Shown: positions 19,173 through 55,500, counted from the stretch's first letter. The stretch is DNA of 64,000 nucleotides from Lepidodermella squamata (GCA_047495785.1 JBLDXI010000017.1:2728001-2792000), one strand, 5' to 3'. Notes: a model not told the origin generated them from the letters alone. Program-made: numbers and translations.

Positions 19173-19724
19173 TCACATCCGGTTGTAGCGTCCCACGACT
19201 GTTTTACAATTGGGACAAACGTGAACGGCGTCTTTGCAGGAATTGACACACAGTGGAATTAAACAGCAGCCAAGCCTAAAAAAATAATCATTGCACAAAT
19301 AATCAAGGCGAAAACTGCAAACCAACCAGAATCCGAAGAATAGAATGATACCGACCATCATCCAAGTCATACACCCGTTCTCGTAATGAACCTGTGTCGT
19401 TATTTGCGACTTGCAGTTAATGCATGTGGTCACAGTCGGGTACGCCCCAAGAATGGCTGGCATAGTCATGTTTGTTGAAATGACAACGGTGTTAGTTGGC
19501 TGAGTAAAGACAGGGGGCGCCATTCCTGGAGTACGAGCTTTACAACAAAATAATTTAGTTATTTCAGAAATAATACCATATTGATTGCCATAATTGCCTT
19601 GGTTATTATAAGGCGGCTGTTGAGGTGGATAACCATAATTTGGTTGGGCGGGTTGATAGTAACCAGGAGGAGGAGGATTGCCCCCTTCGATGCTATTTGG
19701 ATGTGGCGCAGTCTTATTTTCCAT
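19173..19724 (-). CDS. LITAF-domain protein 3
   Basis: PPPPGYY N-terminus; TTCINC...GFW|LGCCLIPLCVNSCKDAVHVCPNC. Confidence 0.95.
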   Translation of the reverse strand: MENKTAPHPNSIEGGNPPPPGYYQPAQPNYGYPPQQPPYNNQGNYGNQYGIISEITKLFCCKARTPGMAPPVFTQPTNTVVISTNMTMPAILGAYPTVTTCINCKSQITTQVHYENGCMTWMMVGIILFFGFWLVCSFRLDYLCNDYFFRLGCCLIPLCVNSCKDAVHVCPNCKTVVGRYNRM

Positions 19725-20075
19725 GTGCCTCAGTGGATTAGTGTTGGGCAAAACTCGAAACAAAACAAAGTAGGGCAGGTCTTGCAACTACGACGAAAAC
19801 AACTACGACAGGTTTTACCTTAGCGACCGATCGATTAATCCCAGCCAATAGCGTTGTTTCAAAACGATCAATGATTCATTTATGACATTTATTATGCTTC
19901 ACAATGCATCGAGTAAAAAACCATACGGCGGAAATCATTCATTCGAACCATCAACGATAGAAAATATAATAGTATGTACAAAAACATCAAATATGCGGTA
20001 AAAATCAACGTAATGCATTTATACAAAGCTAAAATCTGGCAAGCTACAAAGTCTTTTAAAAATTGCTGTGCATTT

Positions 20076-22456: not shown

Positions 22457-23063
22457 TCAAACTTCAATTTTAACTGATTTCCCGATCAGATATTTGCATT
22501 TCGGACAGCAGTGATAAGCGTCTTTGAAGTATTTGACAAAAAATGGGACGAGACAGCAGCCAAGCCTGAAAATATAATTATTTTTAAATTCTGTTCTCAG
22601 AGGATTTAGAGGGCCGTGTCCCGAATTAGGAAAATTCTGAACACATATTTATAAAAAGCAATTACCAGAGGCCAAAGACAATGCAGATTCCGAAGCACAG
22701 CCAAGCGAAGAACCCAACTTTATATCTGACATTGGTTGTAATATCTTCCCGACAATTAGGACATTGAACCTCTTTCGGTACTATTCCCAGGCCTTGCATT
22801 TGGCCTACAGTTTCTTGCGGGCTTGGCGGTGGCATTTGAATGGCAACAACGCCGCTTGACGATTCCATTTGAGCGGTGGGTGGTGGCGGGCAGGAGATAT
22901 TGGTCTGCGAGGCTGATGGCGCGGTCATAATTAGGGTCGGTAATTGCACAGAAAAAACCGAGTCGCGGTAGTAAGTTTCGCGTAGATCTTGTTGCCGAAT
23001 GACTAACTCGCCGCTACTTGGCGACACGACGACTACATCCGGATCGCTCACTGATGACATCAT
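22457..23063 (-). CDS. LITAF-domain protein 4 (no PPxY motif)
   Basis: PKEVQCPNC...FGLW|LGCCLVPFFVKYFKDAYHCCPKCKYLIGK. Confidence 0.93.
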
Positions 23064-23805
23064 CTCCGCGGCTACGCTGCTAATTTCATAGTAATTTATC
23101 AAAAATTAGCAGTGCCATCATATCTAGGCATCTTATGTTATTCAGGCGCTTGATGATGCCGTTTGGTCTTTTACACCACCGCCTATTTGCTTAGCTGTCC
23201 AATATACAAAAACCGACGCGAACTATATAGTCTTTTTATCACATCACCGTGGATGTTATTATACACATCAAATAACATTTGATCTTCCATATATAATAAA
23301 GACAACGTCGGATGCGCAGAATGTTAGGATCCTCCTTAATAAACATCATGTCAAGTGTGAGGGCCGCACCCATCAATCTCAGGCCTGAGTCATATGAGAG
23401 TCTTCAAATAAAGTGGCCTGCAAAACGAGATTCAAATGAATTCGAAGTTAACCGTACCTGATGCGCAGTATTTTCAGGTGCAAAAGCAAATAAAAACCTT
23501 TACCCCGCACTTGACTTAATTAGTCATCTAATATCGATGAAAATCTCGGCTCGGCATGCAAAAATATCGATGTATTGTTATCATATCATAAGCGAGCGCG
23601 ATTTTGAATTCTACTGCAGATCGAGGTGCATTGTTTGCCCGTGCCTTTTTTCATTAAAGGTGACACTTATAGCCTCTCGGCCGCTGTATTTACGATGCTG
23701 GTCGATACCGTGTTCCAAGGTTGACAGACCTGCCGCCAGGCAACTTCCTGCTTTATCTATTTTCCACGAATTTATATGTTGGCGAAACATTTTGAACATA
23801 TTGAT

Positions 23806-27102: not shown

Positions 27103-27852
27103 TTCTCAGAAAATAAACTAAAAGGCGGAAAAATCAAAGGAAAATATCCTTATAAAACTGTTTCAATAAATCATCAACAAAGTCCAGTTATTCATCGCTG
27201 AAATTTCTTGAAACGAGTATATGTATCACTGCATGGAATGCATGAAGGAAACTACGCTACATGTTCATTATAATCATGTGAGCACTCTCTACCACTGTTA
27301 TACCTTCTTTCATACTTTTTTCTTAGCATCAAGGCCGTGTGTAGCACCACGTATAAGGTAAGCGCAGGCTGAATCAGCATATCTATGCTTGGTCGGCGGC
27401 CGTGCAAGCATAATATATCATCAAGCATATACTGCTCACATATACGTCTTACATGAATTGTTATGCCCGGCACAATTTTTTTCCTAATACATCGGGGGCA
27501 CAAGGCGAAAAAAACGGTATCGGGCAAATGTAATAATAGAAGAAAGCTGCGAGACGCGCACATTCTCCCGCCAATTTTGGAACTGCGAAATACACGCGCT
27601 GCCGGTTGTAGTTTGCGGCGCGCCAAGTGCGGCAATATTTCATACGAAAATTGCCCCGTGAGACATTTCTGCCACTGTCTGTCTTTTTTAGCCAATATAT
27701 TGCTTCATTCATTGGGTCTGTTTTTCGTCGGAAAAATTTAACCGAATCTCAGATGTAACTCAGGAATTTTATTTCAGGTAAATTCAAGCATTAATTAGCA
27801 GTAAATATACTGAGATTTATTGGAAAACGAAGTCAGAAAATAATTATTATCG

Positions 27853-28474
27853 TTAAATTCGCTTATGAAGTCCTAGTAAACGTTTGCAATTCGGGCACTT
27901 GTGAGCGACGTCTTTGGCTCCCTTCACGCTGAAAAACAACGGAAATTCGTGTCAGTCTCGGGTTATTTGGTAACATATTCTTACCAGCAGGGTATCCAGC
28001 TGAACAGGATGCAGCCGAATATAACAAGTAACGCGAAAATCAGCCAAGTCAGACCGCCAATTCGGTAATCGATGCTTGTAGTAATTTGGGCGTAGCAAAA
28101 TGGACAGGTCATCAACTGAGGATCTGAAATAGAACAGCATCAAATTTTTAATTTCGGAAAACGGCACCCGAAGTAATTACGAGGTCCAAACTGAGGTGAA
28201 GTCACAACGACCGCATTAACTGTCTGAGCTGAAACAACGATAAAACAATGATAGTGATTTTTCAGTTATATTTTGAATTACGTTGGGATTGAAGTACGAC
28301 TATTTGCGCAGATTCGACTGGTCTCTGAGCTGGTTGGTACGACTGAACAGTAGGTTGGCCGCCCTGGTACGGTCCGTATGGGGGTGGTGGGGGTGCCCCA
28401 GGCGCCGATGGGTAAATCGGCTTTTGTTCACCCGATTGGTTGTAGTAGCTGACGTTGGCGGCGGGTTGCTGCAT
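27853..28474 (-). CDS. LITAF-domain protein 7 (PSAP and PPPY), 4 exons
   Basis: YPSAPGAPPPPPY...QFGP|HPQLMTCPFC...WIPC|CVKGAKDVAHKCPNC. Confidence 0.93.
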
Positions 28475-28777
28475 TTTCTACTCGATTATACGAAAAGTGA
28501 GCCCTTTCAGGCCGATGAGACCCACCCAAGAATTGCGGTTGCCAACGGCATACATTCCGCGGCGATGATTGGGTGAAAGGAGCGTCTTCAAAAGAACTGT
28601 AAAAAATCGGATCGTTTTGAATTTGTTTGAATGACATCGGCAACTTGAATAGGTTACGCCCTACTTTCAAATGAATCAGACCAATGACCAAATCACGTTT
28701 TTTACTGAGCATTTTTCTCCATCAAAAACAACAATAAATATTGGAATAAATTATTATTACTATTTATAGGCAATGAA

Positions 28778-30054
28778 TCAGTGATGGCGAAGGTAATAAG
28801 TTGGATTTTTGTTGAAAAGATGCGCATTCAACATTTTCGCACTGTATTTGATGATCGAGAAAGCGATTTGTGAGATGAGCATCTCAGGCTGTGGCAAGCG
28901 GTGGCGAACAACGAAGCGGACAAACGTGTCCGGAATAGCGCCCTGCGCACCAAAAAACAGGCCCTGAACTTCGATATCTTGCAAGTTGAAGCCGCGAAAT
29001 TTGTTGAGCAGATGAGGCACGCACGGCTCGTAGATTCGCTTTTTCTCCGCGTCAACGTGACCAGCTTGAAGCCGCAGTAAAACCGGACTTGAAGCACTAG
29101 CTTCGAAACGGATGGTAGGGTCCAGAAGAAGACCGGTCTTGGTTTTCGTATCAATTATTAATATATCAAGCCGGCGGTTCGCTCCGTCGACAGCACGAGT
29201 ATTCAACTCCTCGTATACTGAAAAAATAATGGGTAAAAATTTGGGACATATAGAGGCGTTTATATACCTTTAAATCCACCTTTGCGACGAAAGGCATCTG
29301 CGATAAGGGATCTAACCCGATGATGTCTGTTGTTACGCAGAACAGCTCCGTACGGGCAAGATCCTAGAATATGGCTCAACGTCTCGCTTTCGCAGTGACA
29401 GTGGCGACATTTTCGAATAGGTTCTACGTCATCTTCGCGATATTCCTGTCGATGTAAATCACTGCCGGAACCAGCTAATGAGCCATCATCAACTGGTTTC
29501 AATTCGCTAGTTAGGCCTATGATGGACATCGTGCTGACAGACGCGACATTTGCCAACATTTCACGCGCCATTGACCACTCAAATAATGAAAGCCCTTGCA
29601 ATGGAGATTCGCGCTTCGATTCCGAATGCGACATTTTCGCATTTTGATCGTAAAATACGTAGTCGTAATCGTGGCCTTGAAACTGCGGCTTCATATTGAT
29701 GATTCGCCGGTGTTGTTCCTTATTTTTCAAACTTTGCCGGTAAATTCCGCAACGTTGATCGCCACACCACCAGTAATAAGGTGGATCGCGGCGTTTCGGG
29801 TAAAAATATTGACTCGGCTGACGTGGTTGTTTTTGATTGCTCGCATGCCAAGTAAATTTTGTATTATTCTTGCGTTGCTCGCCTAAATTCGGCAAGCCAA
29901 CGTCGATTCGCAACCGGTAAGGTGGAGATTGGGAACGCTTGTTCCTTTTGTCGACTCTTTTTGAGTTCCAACTCAGCGAGGAAGAGGTAGAAATGAAAGA
30001 CCTGAGTTCTAAATTCAATAAATTATTGCCTACACCGGCTAGTTTGAAAGCCAT
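28778..30054 (-). CDS. Intron-containing gene encoding a CCHC zinc knuckle plus restriction-like (PD-(D/E)xK) endonuclease derived from an RLE non-LTR retrotransposon; no RT
   Basis: GLSLFEW...MLANVASV, CRHC-X8-H-X4-C, RHH, FK|VYEE, RRLDILI, LLDPTIRFE, EKKRIY, GLFFGAQG. A 50-nt GT-AG intron (29267-29218) restores the frame. Confidence 0.85.
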
Positions 30055-30810
30055 TGAGGATCCTATATAACTGAAAAACGATACAAAATTATAACCAGGC
30101 AAATATTAAGGAGGATTGGTTAAAAGCAGTCAAATTTTGAATTAAAACTAGTGAAAAATCGGTGCATATTACGAGGTAAAATTCGCATTATAGCTCGTAG
30201 CTCGTACTGACCAATGCTTTGGCTACACAATGAAAACAGAAGGATGCTTGCAGCTGTAATACAATGCATGTTCAGCCAATACTACGTGGTATTTCTATAT
30301 GAGAATTTGGCTGCATTGCGCTATAGTATTCGCCTAATACATTTTGGCCGTGGCCAAGATGTATTATAACACTGCGGCGGAGTAGAATCGTTATTATTAA
30401 GGGTATTTAAATATTACATCATAAGATACTCGAATGGAGCGGCGCTAGTCCAGGTGTTTGACCGGCCGGCTCAGCGTGATGTGCGAAAGCGCGCGCATTA
30501 TTAACACGCAAAGCTATAGCTGGACCACAATAGCCACAATCGCGCACATTCGGCATATGGAGTGTATAATATACTTATAGAAAATATTATTTATAATATG
30601 GAAAAGGCACTCCCACCCCAGTGCTTCGAAATCATGTTGACACGCCGATGACAGCTGAGATGTTCCCTATATTCCCATAAACGCAACCGAAATGAGCGAA
30701 AAATTATTTTTATTTTTAATGGCACAATCAAACAATTCTGAACACACCGATGAGCGAAGAACAGAATGCAACAAAATCACTATAAGCGTCATCAAGTTAT
30801 TTCTCGATTT

Positions 30811-37393: not shown

Positions 37394-37988
37394 TTAACGT
37401 AGTCTGTTGAGGCTCGCGATTGTCCTATTGCAGTTGGGACATTTGTGGTGGTAATCTAAAATTATAACATATATTTTTGTATAAAGACGATGCCGATTCA
37501 ACTGCTACAATTACCTTGTAAATCATCCATACAAAACGGAATAAAGCAGCATCCACAACTGCAGATGAGAAATATTATGTGTCTAATTCAAGGATAGTTG
37601 TTACAACTTACAAGCAGCCGAAAAGTGTGAGACCAGTGCATATAATCCAGGGCAAACCTCCGCTTTGGCGTAATACTTTGGTTGTAACCGAAACGTGGCA
37701 ATAGGGACACTGGACATTGGCTGGTTTTTTCGTAAAAGCCGTAAATGCAATGGTTGACATTTCTGAAGATGGTATAGGCGGGTTCAAGTAGCACGTCACA
37801 TCTTGGAACGTCTGGTACTTGGCTGGCAATTGTTGCTCTTGCGTTGTGATTGGTAGAGGAAACGGCTCGCTGATGTGCTTGTAAGATGGTTTTTCTTCAA
37901 GAATCGGCGTTTTATCAGCGGTCATAATGAAATTTTGAGCACTATTCGAAGTAACGACGAAGTCAACATAGTAGGCGTTTTCAACCAT
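37394..37988 (-). CDS. LITAF-domain protein 12 (no PPxY; start may be 37925)
   Basis: PANVQCPYC...GGLPW...|[14 protein letters not shown]|DYHHKCPNCNRTIA. Confidence 0.92.
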
Positions 37989-51800: not shown

Positions 51801-52523
51801 AGTCACACAGTACCCTCTTTCTTTTTAACTAGGATAGTTTGTGTCTGTCGCAATAGACAACAAAGGATTAACATGGCTTGGGCATCACTTTCTTTTTAGT
51901 ATGTCACGCGGAGCAATTGTTATTATGCCTCTTACTTTATTCACCGTGAAATGTCCCAATTGTTTTCTTCATGTCTGTGTATTAGGAACACTCTGCGGCT
52001 GTAAAGCTCTTAATAATTTCAGGGAGTGTCAAGTTCTGTGAGTTATTGTTATACAATCTAGTACTAAATATATCGTAAATTACGGCAATTTTATGGAACA
52101 TGCTTGTATCCCAAGTGTCCTTCACATGAACGTGTCTAGTACTCGCATTTTCTTGTGTCTCGTATCGATCGATTGCACCCTCCGCTAATTCTCGCAGAGC
52201 AAAAGTATAGCTTTACATTACGCACGCGGAACACGAGACGCAGCGCGAAAAGGCGTAACTTGCTTTCAGCAATATTGGAAAGCCTACTTGAATGAAATCG
52301 AGGTAGCCGTCTCTAGAGAGTATGCTCGCTTTAAGCCAGGAGTAATTTCCCTATGATTCAGTTGCAACAGGCGACATTTTACCCTGTTAAGATGTTGGCG
52401 TTGTGTTTAATTAGCCTCAAACGTGCGTTGTTCTAGATTGGATTATTACTTTAATGTTTTACTAGATGCTTAGTTTTATGACTGTAAAATGTCCTCGAAT
52501 TGGCTAACAATTCAAATTTCATC

Positions 52524-55500
52524 ATGAGCTCTTCAGTGGAGAGTGATCAAATTATATCGGTTGACGCCCCGATGTCAGTGGACGAAGGCTCGAATGAAGG
52601 TTCGGTGTCGATGGCGGCTTCGCAAGACGTCCCGGAGTCACCGGCACCGTCCACATCCGGTACGCAAAAACTCGCCTGCCAAGTTTGCAACGAGTGTTCG
52701 CCCAGCATGCGACCCGGTTCTCTGGCCTGCGAGGCGTGTAAAAAATTCTTCATGCGTAACTACGACGTTACGAAAAAATTCCAGTGCGACAACGGCGGAA
52801 AATGCCTCCAGGTCGGCTCGGCTGTTAATCGGCGCTCGTGCCAAGCCTGCCGGATGGAACGTTGCATGGCCCTCGGCCTCAGCGAGAAGGTCCGTCCGCC
52901 GAAACCGGCAATCGATCTTCGCTTTGTGCCGTGCGCAGTTTGCGGCGCCTCATCAACCGGTTACCATTTCGGAATTTTATCCTGCGAAGGTTGTAAAGGC
53001 TTTTTCCGCCGAACGGTGAAGTACGACCTGGCAAAAAATTTCACCTGTGATACCGGTGGCAAATGTGTTATTGATCCGCTGCGGCAAAAGTGCAAAAAGT
53101 GCCGGTTTGAACGGTGCCTCTCTGCCGGCATGTCGCCAACCGGTTCTCACATCGGCCGGCATACAAATGCTCAGAGAGCCGAGACAAAACGCGAGATCGA
53201 ACGGCTGCAAAACGAGCAAAAGCTATTAAAAGCGCCGATTATGGTCCGGCAACTGAAGCGAGGAGCTGCGGCGGCTGCGTTATCAGGTGGCTCCCAGCAG
53301 AGCCAGGCTGAAGTTTCAACTAAAGCGGAAGCTGCTTCACCCGATAATGAGGTAGCTTCGCCTAATCTGAAACGGAGGCCTCGATCGAGACACAGCTCGG
53401 GTGGGTCTAATTTTCCGACCCCTGCAACCGGCGGGGAGCGGATAACCCCACCGGCTGAAAAATCGCAGGCCCAGCCGAGTCAAGCTCATGATTTTGAAAC
53501 TATGGCAGAAGTATTCGCCACTGCAGCGGCCGCGGGGAAGTCAGACTCCCCTCGTTTCGAGGTAGACGAGGCTACCTTCGCCGCCGCCCAGTCGCTGATG
53601 TCGATTTTCGGCTCCAGCCCATCGGCAGCCTCGTCGTCTTCATGTGTGCCTGATAGTACCGTGAAAAGCCCGTTCCAGCCGCCACAAAGTGTTGAGGCAA
53701 CAACGCCCACCGAGTCTTCCGTATGCAATTTATCGGGCATTTCGAGTTTCTTAGCGCGGCTTAACGCCCAGGCGGCTAATTTGGCCTCACCCCCGACCGC
53801 CCTACACTCACCGTCGACATCATCCACGATCGACCTATGTGTTCCCAGTGCAAGTGCAAATATTCCATGCAACTCGTCGAATGTGAACAACACGGCGGCT
53901 GTATTTGCTGCCGATTACAAAATCCCTGGCTTTACCACCGATGACAATTCTCGCGCTGCCGTGCTTCGGCGGATTCGCATGCCGGTATCTAGATCTAATC
54001 TAATTTGGCTATACGATTCCGGCAGGGAGTGGTTCAACATTCAGAACATTTTGAACCCTGCGGCACCATCGGCGCCTTCGCATTTACAATCGCCTCTAGG
54101 TGCCGCCACCTCGACTTTTCTGCAGCAACTGCGGCCTTTTGGTGACCCTTACTCGCTATCGACGTTTTTCAAAATGCTAGAAGGCGATAATCTCCTACCC
54201 GAGCCGCCCCTGTCTGTTTTCCCTCGCAGCGAATGGCTGCTCGCCCAAGTCACCAATGCTGTTCGCAATTTATCTCATATAAAAAATGTAAGGAATTTTT
54301 CTAAATATGTTATTTGGTTAGCGCTAGGTATTTCAGCTTCCCATTATTTTGAATTTTTCCTGTTGGCAATTACAGAAAATTTGAGAATTTATTCATATTT
54401 TGGTCGTTAACCATCAATTTGAGCCAGGCTGCTAGTAACCCAACAAAGCGGACAGATGAGTTTGGTCATTTAAAGCAGGCAGTCGTTACTCGGGTGATAA
54501 TGAAGGTGCTTCACGAACATGCGTGTGAATAGATACTCTACAATTCCTATTAGAATAAAAATTATTACAAAATTTTACAGTGAACTGAAGAGTGCGCTAT
54601 TATAATTTGACTGCTTTCGTGCGCTATGACATCGAGTTACGAGTCGTTGACATTAACCCAATAAAAACGCTTTGCACTTGCTATGTGAGATACAATGGGG
54701 AAGTTCGAATGAGGAAATACTTGGGAGGGGGTCTGGCCAGTCTCTAGATATCTAAATATAATAACTATCTATATGAAATATATTAAGGTTGAAATAAAGA
54801 CGCAACGACTTCGATAAAATAACGTGAATTTTATGTTTTAAAGCTCCGAATTCATTTTGACCCTGGATGGAGCGCAGAAGAGTGTTGGCGGCAGGGCATG
54901 GTCTGCTTTGAGCACCACACCCGATACGTGCTTGCTTTCGTGCGATCTCTGCCAGGTACAACTTTTTGTCAACCGCTGTTAGCTATTTTTCAATCGTTTT
55001 TTTTTCATTCAAAAACAGGATACGCCGCGTTATCAAGTGCTGATCGGACGACACTATTCACGAATGCGTTGTTCCCGATTGTTGTTGCCCAGCTCAGTCT
55101 CGACTACGACGAGCATGAGCGTGAGGAAAACTACCTATCGATGGACCATATCGGCCGCGAACTGATGACGCTGCACTTTCCGCCTATGGCCCAGCTTCGG
55201 CGGCACTTGGCTGATGCCGGTGTTGGCATAAAATCATCCAAGCTGAACGTCGTCGAATTCGGTTTAATAGCTGCCTTGGTTTTCTTCAATAGTGGTACGT
55301 TTTAGTTTTATTTTTTAATTTTGAAACATTTTAAGGTGGAATTTTTCAATTTAGAACTACCCACACTACACGATTCCGAGAAAGTGCGTCACATCCAAGA
55401 AGAATTTCGGACAGCAGCGTCGATTTTCATCTCTCGGACGTACTCGAATGGTTCGCGCGGAAATTTGGCCCTGACCACCACGCCGACTTCGCCGCTTTCT

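Follow-up and report, generated by a model that had tools for sequence, protein, structure and literature searches.

The window, a stretch of 64,000 nucleotides of the Lepidodermella squamata genome, carries on its minus strand a two-exon gene (28778-30054) of 408 codons plus a stop, which occurs as a single copy in the genome and has in its second exon the core of a PD-(D/E)xK restriction-like endonuclease (RLE). The start ATG lies at 30054-30052, and the frame runs to 29268 and resumes at 29217 to reach a TGA at 28778; a frame check by script found 408 codons and a single terminal stop once the intron was removed. Exon 1 (29268-30054, minus strand) encodes amino acids 1-262 and the first base of the Val263 codon, while exon 2 (28778-29217, minus strand) encodes the remaining 145 amino acids and the stop. 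The intron between them (29218-29267, minus strand) is a 50 nt GT..AG intron in phase 1, lies in the Val codon of FK|VYEE, and ends in the T-rich acceptor TTTTTTCAG. Upstream, 16 nt 5' of the ATG, is an acceptor-like site, TTTTTCAG (30071-30080, minus strand), which from its sequence may be a trans-splice (spliced-leader) acceptor or the acceptor of an upstream intron. The two exons were searched separately in all homology and fold searches, with an uninterrupted homologue described below, P0001, serving as a proxy for the whole module; the exon sequences were combined only inside scripts, for codon numbering and substitution counts.

Residues 154-408 derive from an R2-superfamily non-LTR retrotransposon and comprise its linker helix, CCHC zinc knuckle and RLE, so that the element-derived part of the gene comes to approximately 255 amino acids, including an insertion of about 30 amino acids specific to this lineage. 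The linker helix, GLSLFEWSMAREMLANVASV (aa 154-175; 29530-29595, minus strand), was assigned as element-inherited by BLASTP against an element ORF and by alignment. It is followed, at its junction with the zinc knuckle, by an acidic, Ser-rich insertion (aa 176-213; 29416-29529, minus strand) that is found at the same place in P0001 and not in elements. The zinc knuckle, with C216, C219, H228 and C233 (29356-29409, minus strand), was placed by sequence, alignment and the model of P0001, and the RHH at aa 243-245 (29320-29328, minus strand), whose R, H and H are all invariant in the alignment, corresponds to the RH motif of RLE alpha-helix 1 (PMC4838377). The sequence-only reading had listed the motifs of such a tail, and all of them are present: GLSLFEW..M..NVASV, the knuckle C216-x2-C219-x8-H228-x4-C233, RHH at 243-245, VYEE over the splice site, RRLD, LLDPTIRFE, EKKRIY and GLFFGAQG. 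That reading also described an unrelated N-terminus of about 145 amino acids, which is indeed unique and open but has a true length of 153 amino acids (aa 1-153; 29596-30054, minus strand). This basic region is without an RT or known domain. No matches to residues 1-153 were found in the element ORF, the genome, Pfam or Atlas, and an Atlas feature search with the N-terminus gave best scores of no more than 0.76 and no lead.

Three public runs, labeled X1, X2 and X3 and all kept as contigs, hold the locus. X3 behaves as DNA, with 29 of 30 bins covered at a depth of about 75-200. X1 behaves as RNA, covering exons only and having zero depth in intergenic bins that X3 covers; that it is an RNA run is a guess read from this exon-only pattern. 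Contigs of X1 skip five introns of neighboring genes, with CT..AC ends, and its coverage of the RLE gene, exon 1 included, extends from approximately 28700 to 30190. One X1 contig, with a depth of 4.8 and a shorter side of 24 letters, joins 29217 to 29268 and thereby skips exactly 50 nt with CT..AC ends, so the 50 nt GT-AG intron proposed at FK|VYEE is found both in the sequence and as an exact skip of 29218-29267 in this contig. The gene is transcribed as a host mRNA and spliced, as seen in one low-depth contig of a run whose RNA nature is itself read from its coverage. All six of the listed coding differences between the runs and the window (6/6) fall in third positions and are synonymous. 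X2, labeled as a third organism, contributes a contig of 267 nt that lies over exon 2 and differs at 12 letters. Seven joints of an 'opposite strands' type, of about 90-120 nt each, occur in X1 at 28705-30005; they are confined to the RLE gene and are not seen in the better-covered neighbors. These are probably fold-back artefacts of low-depth contigs, but they may also be read as antisense or hairpin RNA.

Other genes lie in the same window. LITAF-like zinc-ribbon genes (Pfam PF10601) occur four times over 19 kb, all on the minus strand (19176-19787, 22665-23102, 27811-28474 and 37611-37988), and one of them, in the same orientation as the RLE gene, is its immediate downstream neighbor, about 300 nt beyond the RLE stop, and is spliced in X1. 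A 636 amino acid ORF on the plus strand (52500-54410) encodes two separate nuclear-receptor C4 zinc-finger DNA-binding domains (Pfam zf-C4, two stretches, E value 3.6e-35) and is a nuclear receptor of the '2DBD' type. An Rfam scan of the window returned no match.

The 121-Mb assembly was searched for relatives of the gene. The gene itself is the only 100% match, and the next best matches are element tails with 45-50% identity. The protein search with exon 2 found 81 further places (26-51% identity), and the last 50 residues of exon 1, which contain the knuckle, found 51 further places (40-66% identity); these matches elsewhere in the genome are dispersed retroelement copies. One element copy, L015 (G000:C23:847915-851046), has a 673 amino acid open frame with an RT followed by the same tail, and matches the solved R2 retrotransposon proteins with an E value of 1.8e-59. 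By BLASTP against this ORF, aa 154-257 of exon 1 gave an E value of 4e-19 and exon 2 gave 1e-28, with an alignment that is ungapped over the intron position and stops at the natural C-terminus of the element. Judged by these sequence comparisons, the homology of the gene to retroelement tails is far above chance. More than 80 R2-superfamily element tails exist in the genome, several of them in long open frames (up to 1025 amino acids at C23:849 kb), and some of these families may still be active.

The gene lacks the other parts of such an element. No RVT family was found by Pfam, and by BLASTP and tblastn the element ORF matches only aa 154-408; no RT remnant was found by tblastn of the element ORF anywhere in the 64-kb window. 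The earlier statement that no RT lies upstream is therefore upheld by all three methods, and they gave no sign that the upstream part is a degraded RT. No Pfam family was found for exon 1, exon 2 or P0001, and a word-indexed protein search with exon 1 gave no match. Searches for flanking repeats, target-site duplications and terminal inverted repeats at the locus returned short chance matches only, and no poly-A was found there. The locus is also unique at the DNA level in a genome search, so that the single copy predicted from sequence was found by both protein and DNA, with neither the many near-identical copies nor the flanking or terminal repeats and poly-A of a mobile family. A non-LTR retrotransposon family is typically multicopy, intronless and variably 5'-truncated, and the gene does not have this hallmark; it has that of a domesticated gene, namely a single copy with an intact ORF and the marks of mobility lost.

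An exhaustive HMMER search with exon 2 over 1.84 billion representatives produced 434 hits, nearly all of which were element tails of 33-50% identity. One hit, P0001 (502 amino acids, E value 1.6e-51), was 65% identical over exon 2. It is encoded as one uninterrupted ORF on a 6.9-kb eukaryotic scaffold (L021) of an ENA metagenome, and no RT was found upstream of it on L021. P0001 shows 53% identity to exon 1 over aa 152-262 and 71% over the conserved blocks. The N-terminal motif WCGD..C..RQ..EQ.RR..N.K is common to the gene and P0001 (E value 6e-6) and is lacking in elements, as are two insertions that both proteins contain, one between NVASVS and the knuckle and the other with the form SP..LLRLQ..HVD. 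In a maximum likelihood tree of the exon 2 region from 127 sequences, the gene and P0001 are sisters with an SH-aLRT of 99, on a shared stem of 0.41 with each tip at 0.20, and their nearest outgroups are ordinary element fragments.

Between the gene and P0001, pS is 0.87 (saturated) and pN is 0.23-0.26. Together with the six listed variants, all synonymous, these values show that the gene is clearly under purifying selection, and a dN/dS near 1, which would be expected of a neutral sequence, was not found. The RLE is conserved relative to P0001 about as well as the membrane domain of an ion channel encoded next to P0001, which is 58-76% identical to the best match in the genome. P0001 is thus a homologue, from a diverged organism, with the same derived architecture under purifying selection, as expected of a domesticated gene, and is the one full-length homologue found. 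At the position of the intron, L021 reads TTTAAAG|TCTAC without interruption. Since the intron is absent in P0001, either the lineage of the window gained it or the other lineage lost it; for a sequence of retroelement origin, a gain is the simpler assumption.

No common neighbors were found when the 6.9 kb of L021 was compared with the window. The ion-channel neighbor of P0001 has its best match on the same contig as the gene, C17, at a distance of about 1.04 Mb, and another neighbor (L021 3-1124) maps equally well to C48:64055-64771 and C10:2442001-2442727, a pair that may reflect duplication or a haplotype left uncollapsed; the RLE gene is single copy. A word-indexed search with P0001 found element fragments of no more than 45% identity, besides three short cockroach protein matches (53-55% identity over about 16% of the query). 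A first scan of JGI metagenome contigs for a further homologue gave no match, and a second gave only 23-residue knuckle matches, which probably derive from elements. Several other database proteins with an RLE tail and no RT (P0002, P0003 and P0155-P0157) are chimeric gene calls over element fragments, e.g. in Periplaneta americana. Because such chimeric calls are present in databases, an RLE hit without an RT is not by itself evidence of domestication.

The fold of the C-terminal module was compared with solved structures. A phmmer search of the PDB with exon 2 alone gave no match, whereas a profile of exon 2 and 57 tails (P0001 and 56 element tails) matched the RLE of solved vertebrate R2 proteins with an E value of 1.9e-11. 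The AlphaFold model of exon 2 had a pLDDT of 89.8, and its top Foldseek matches were R2Tg, the R2 of Platysternon and R2Bm (TM 0.60-0.72). For P0001, the knuckle and RLE (residues 252-445) were modeled with a pLDDT of 92.8, and the model aligned to the same three R2 proteins with Z of 15.9-19.8 and rmsd of 2.1-2.5 Å over 177-182 residues, the best alignment having Z of 19.8 and rmsd of 2.1 over 182 residues. Behind these came unrelated PD-(D/E)xK nucleases, namely cap-snatching endonucleases of viruses, with Z of no more than 8.9 against the P0001 model. R2 RLE domains are thus matched in both profile and structure searches, for exon 2 directly and for the knuckle and RLE together by way of P0001, in agreement with the class proposed from sequence. 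A homodimer prediction for the knuckle and RLE of P0001 scored 0.01, which speaks neither for nor against a dimer.

The gene and P0001 keep every column that is at least 90% conserved in the 56 element tails, with the sole exception of R91Q. In exon 2 the kept set comprises E3, R14, R15, D17, D32-P-T, R36, E38, E57-K58, Y62, G85, G89, G92, S125 and H132, and in exon 1 it comprises the knuckle and RHH, at positions identical in elements and P0001. The Asp of RRLD (D17; 29165-29167, minus strand), the Asp of LLDPT (D32; 29120-29122, minus strand) and K58 and Y62 of EKKRIY (E57-K58; 29042-29047, minus strand) lie in columns that are invariant or at least 96% conserved in the 56 element tails, and the three motifs align to the same motifs of the solved vertebrate R2. 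D17, whose column is invariant, corresponds to the D of the R2 'KPD', which is D996 of R2Bm; the position aligned to this element Asp differs between the 8gh6 and 8ibw chains. D996A is an EN active-site mutation and the standard nuclease-dead allele of R2Bm (PMC11194090). By alignment, D32 is the second catalytic acid and K58 the first Lys of K..KY, the relocated catalytic lysine, and in R2Bm the two acids of KPD...D and this Lys carry out catalysis, while the RH of helix 1 is needed in DNA binding and cleavage (PMC4838377).

The exception is Gln91 of GAQG (28943-28945, minus strand), which stands in place of the RG.W Arg after beta-strand 4. This Arg is present in all 56 element tails and in the aligned solved vertebrate R2, while both the gene and P0001 have Gln. 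In R2Bm the RG.W Arg is part of the DNA-contact surface, and an R-to-A mutant retains most of its cleavage (PMC4838377). Since the Arg is replaced by Gln, DNA binding may be weakened. The knuckle and RLE of R2 separate the two DNA strands around the position of the nick and keep hold of the nicked one (PMC12180492), and this property, together with the intact catalytic set, would make metal-dependent nicking or cleaving of DNA the most likely activity of the protein. The suggestion that the gene encodes a possibly active nuclease thus draws on catalytic residues that are intact and on one invariant DNA-contact Arg that is replaced, and we regard retained catalysis as somewhat favored by the conserved residues.

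These results suggest the following history. The gene would descend from the 3' part of a non-LTR retrotransposon of the R2 superfamily, and a 5'-truncated insertion would be its simplest origin. Of the element, the linker helix, CCHC zinc knuckle and PD-(D/E)xK RLE would have been retained, and the reverse transcriptase and the DNA-targeting domains at the N-terminus would have been lost. A new basic N-terminus of 153 amino acids and an acidic insertion ahead of the knuckle would have been added, and this lineage would also have acquired a spliceosomal intron. One domestication before the divergence of the organisms that carry the gene and P0001 would suffice, and a phase of change, to which the long stem and the R-to-Q replacement may belong, would have been followed by purifying selection. 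The knuckle and RLE would still be a metal-dependent DNA nuclease that uses D17, D32, K58 and the RH motif, with a DNA-contact surface altered by the Gln that takes the place of the RG.W Arg, and either the new N-terminus or partner proteins would direct it to its targets. That this is a host gene which arose by domestication of an R2-superfamily element tail is, in our view, very probable; the single copy, the spliced contig, the homologue without an RT and the purifying selection all support the domesticated RLE gene that had been proposed from sequence. The complete explanation, in which the domesticated R2-type tail is also a working metal-dependent DNA nuclease, we consider reasonably probable.

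The main rival is a gene that was domesticated but is not a nuclease, acting instead as a DNA- or RNA-binding or scaffold module in the manner of Prp8, or as a truncated protein that inhibits the R2-type elements of the genome by competing for DNA intermediates or partners. The Gln that both proteins carry at a position where 56 of 56 elements have Arg points to a changed DNA interface, and the long shared stem of 0.41 suggests a functional change. Prp8 provides a precedent for an RLE-like site that looks intact and is non-catalytic (PMC5678591), and a repressor would find targets among the related element tails, which number more than 80 and in some cases lie in long open frames. However, D17, D32, K58 and RH are kept in both proteins despite saturated synonymous sites, while a pure scaffold would be expected to relax them, and the R-to-A mutant at the RG.W position of R2Bm retained most cleavage (PMC4838377). 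Competition for target sites is moreover hard to picture for a protein without the N-terminal target-binding domains. We hold a non-catalytic binder or element inhibitor to be possible, though rather doubtful.

Two further explanations would deny that this is a domesticated host gene at all, and both are unlikely. In one, the locus would be a mobile, non-autonomous element that encodes only an endonuclease and borrows an R2-type RT in trans. The different gene neighborhood of P0001 is what such mobility would produce, but exactly one copy exists at both the DNA and protein levels, and it is without terminal repeats, target-site duplications or poly-A. The spliceosomal intron, which retrotransposition would erase, is present and is removed in RNA, and synonymous-only variation (6/6 listed) with long purifying selection on a single locus is also at odds with mobility; we give this reading very little credence. 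In the other, the locus would be an old and decaying 5'-truncated retroelement copy whose open frame and GT..AG 50-mer arose by chance and whose RNA is read-through noise. Truncation at the 5' end is the usual fate of non-LTR insertions, and the homology does reach the natural C-terminus of the element ORF. Against this stand 408 open codons, of which 153 are upstream of the element-derived part, and the 45-50% identity to the nearest element, since without selection a copy so old would have accumulated many stops. The exact removal of 50 nt that yields an ungapped alignment is seen in RNA, P0001 has the same non-element N-terminus and likewise lacks an RT, and pN is far below pS. A decaying copy is to us the least credible of the readings considered.

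A domesticated R2-type tail may be compared with several known systems. The tails of the R2 superfamily (R2Tg, 9dou/9nl3; R2 of Platysternon, 9nl2; R2Bm, 8gh6/8ibw) share with the gene the motifs RH, (R/K)xD, D.T, EK..Y and G..G. Unlike R2 elements, the gene is without an RT, the N-terminal zinc-finger/Myb targeting domains and the RNA-binding parts; it is single copy and has an intron, a new N-terminus, the pre-knuckle insertion of about 30 amino acids and the replacement of the RG.W Arg by Gln. The endonuclease-like domain of Prp8 is likewise a restriction-like endonuclease fold, related to that of RLE LINEs, in a host protein (PMC5678591), and is the only host-side relative of the RLE that we found in the literature. 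Prp8 differs in being a giant protein, as old as the eukaryotic ancestor, in which this domain sits beside RT-like and linker domains, and it lacks both a CCHC knuckle and catalytic activity, whereas the gene described here is young, lineage-restricted and stand-alone, with a knuckle, an RLE and an intact catalytic set. No Prp8 chain was among the 50 entries listed in the structure search with the P0001 model.

The archaeal Holliday-junction resolvases Hjc/Hje and the type II restriction enzymes have the same PD-(D/E)xK core and are also stand-alone proteins. The RLE of R2 has been modeled on Hjc, with which it has in common a basic residue after beta-strand 4 (PMC4838377); in the gene this residue is Gln and not basic. 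Among the 50 entries listed in the P0001 structure search there was no Hjc or Hje chain. Molecular domestication has its textbook examples in host genes that derive from transposon nucleases, RAG1 and PiggyMac among them; known cases include RAG1 (from Transib), HARBI1, PGBD5, THAP9 and the ciliate PiggyMac. These followed the same route, in which the nuclease of a mobile element became a host gene that is single copy, under selection and stripped of the hallmarks of mobility, but they derive from the DDE/RNase-H-like transposases of DNA transposons, while the gene described here would derive from a retrotransposon PD-(D/E)xK nuclease. To our knowledge, the well-known domesticated transposon nucleases all come from DNA transposons. 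A full-text literature search that covers part of the journals found no case of a domesticated, exapted or co-opted restriction-like endonuclease.

If our reading is correct, the PD-(D/E)xK nuclease of a retrotransposon would here have undergone recent domestication, the first such case known to us. Until now, only the very old, non-catalytic domain of Prp8 has tied the nuclease of early-branching, site-specific retrotransposons to host biology. In addition, the locus captures an intron change in a retroelement-derived gene, since a spliceosomal intron was either gained or lost at a defined site (TTTAAAG|T). The element-derived part would be a natural minimal R2 nuclease of about 250 amino acids, consisting of linker helix, knuckle and RLE and selected without an RT, and would thus offer a natural test of how far this module alone can melt DNA, nick it and choose a substrate, a timely question given the development of R2 proteins for gene insertion. 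We put at about even the chance that the zinc knuckle and RLE of an R2-type element have become, in an animal lineage, a host nuclease that stands alone, is catalytically active and has a new N-terminal region for targeting. Since the source module melts and nicks DNA during target-primed reverse transcription, such a nuclease could serve in repair, on DNA that is branched or melted, or could counter the retroelements from which it came.
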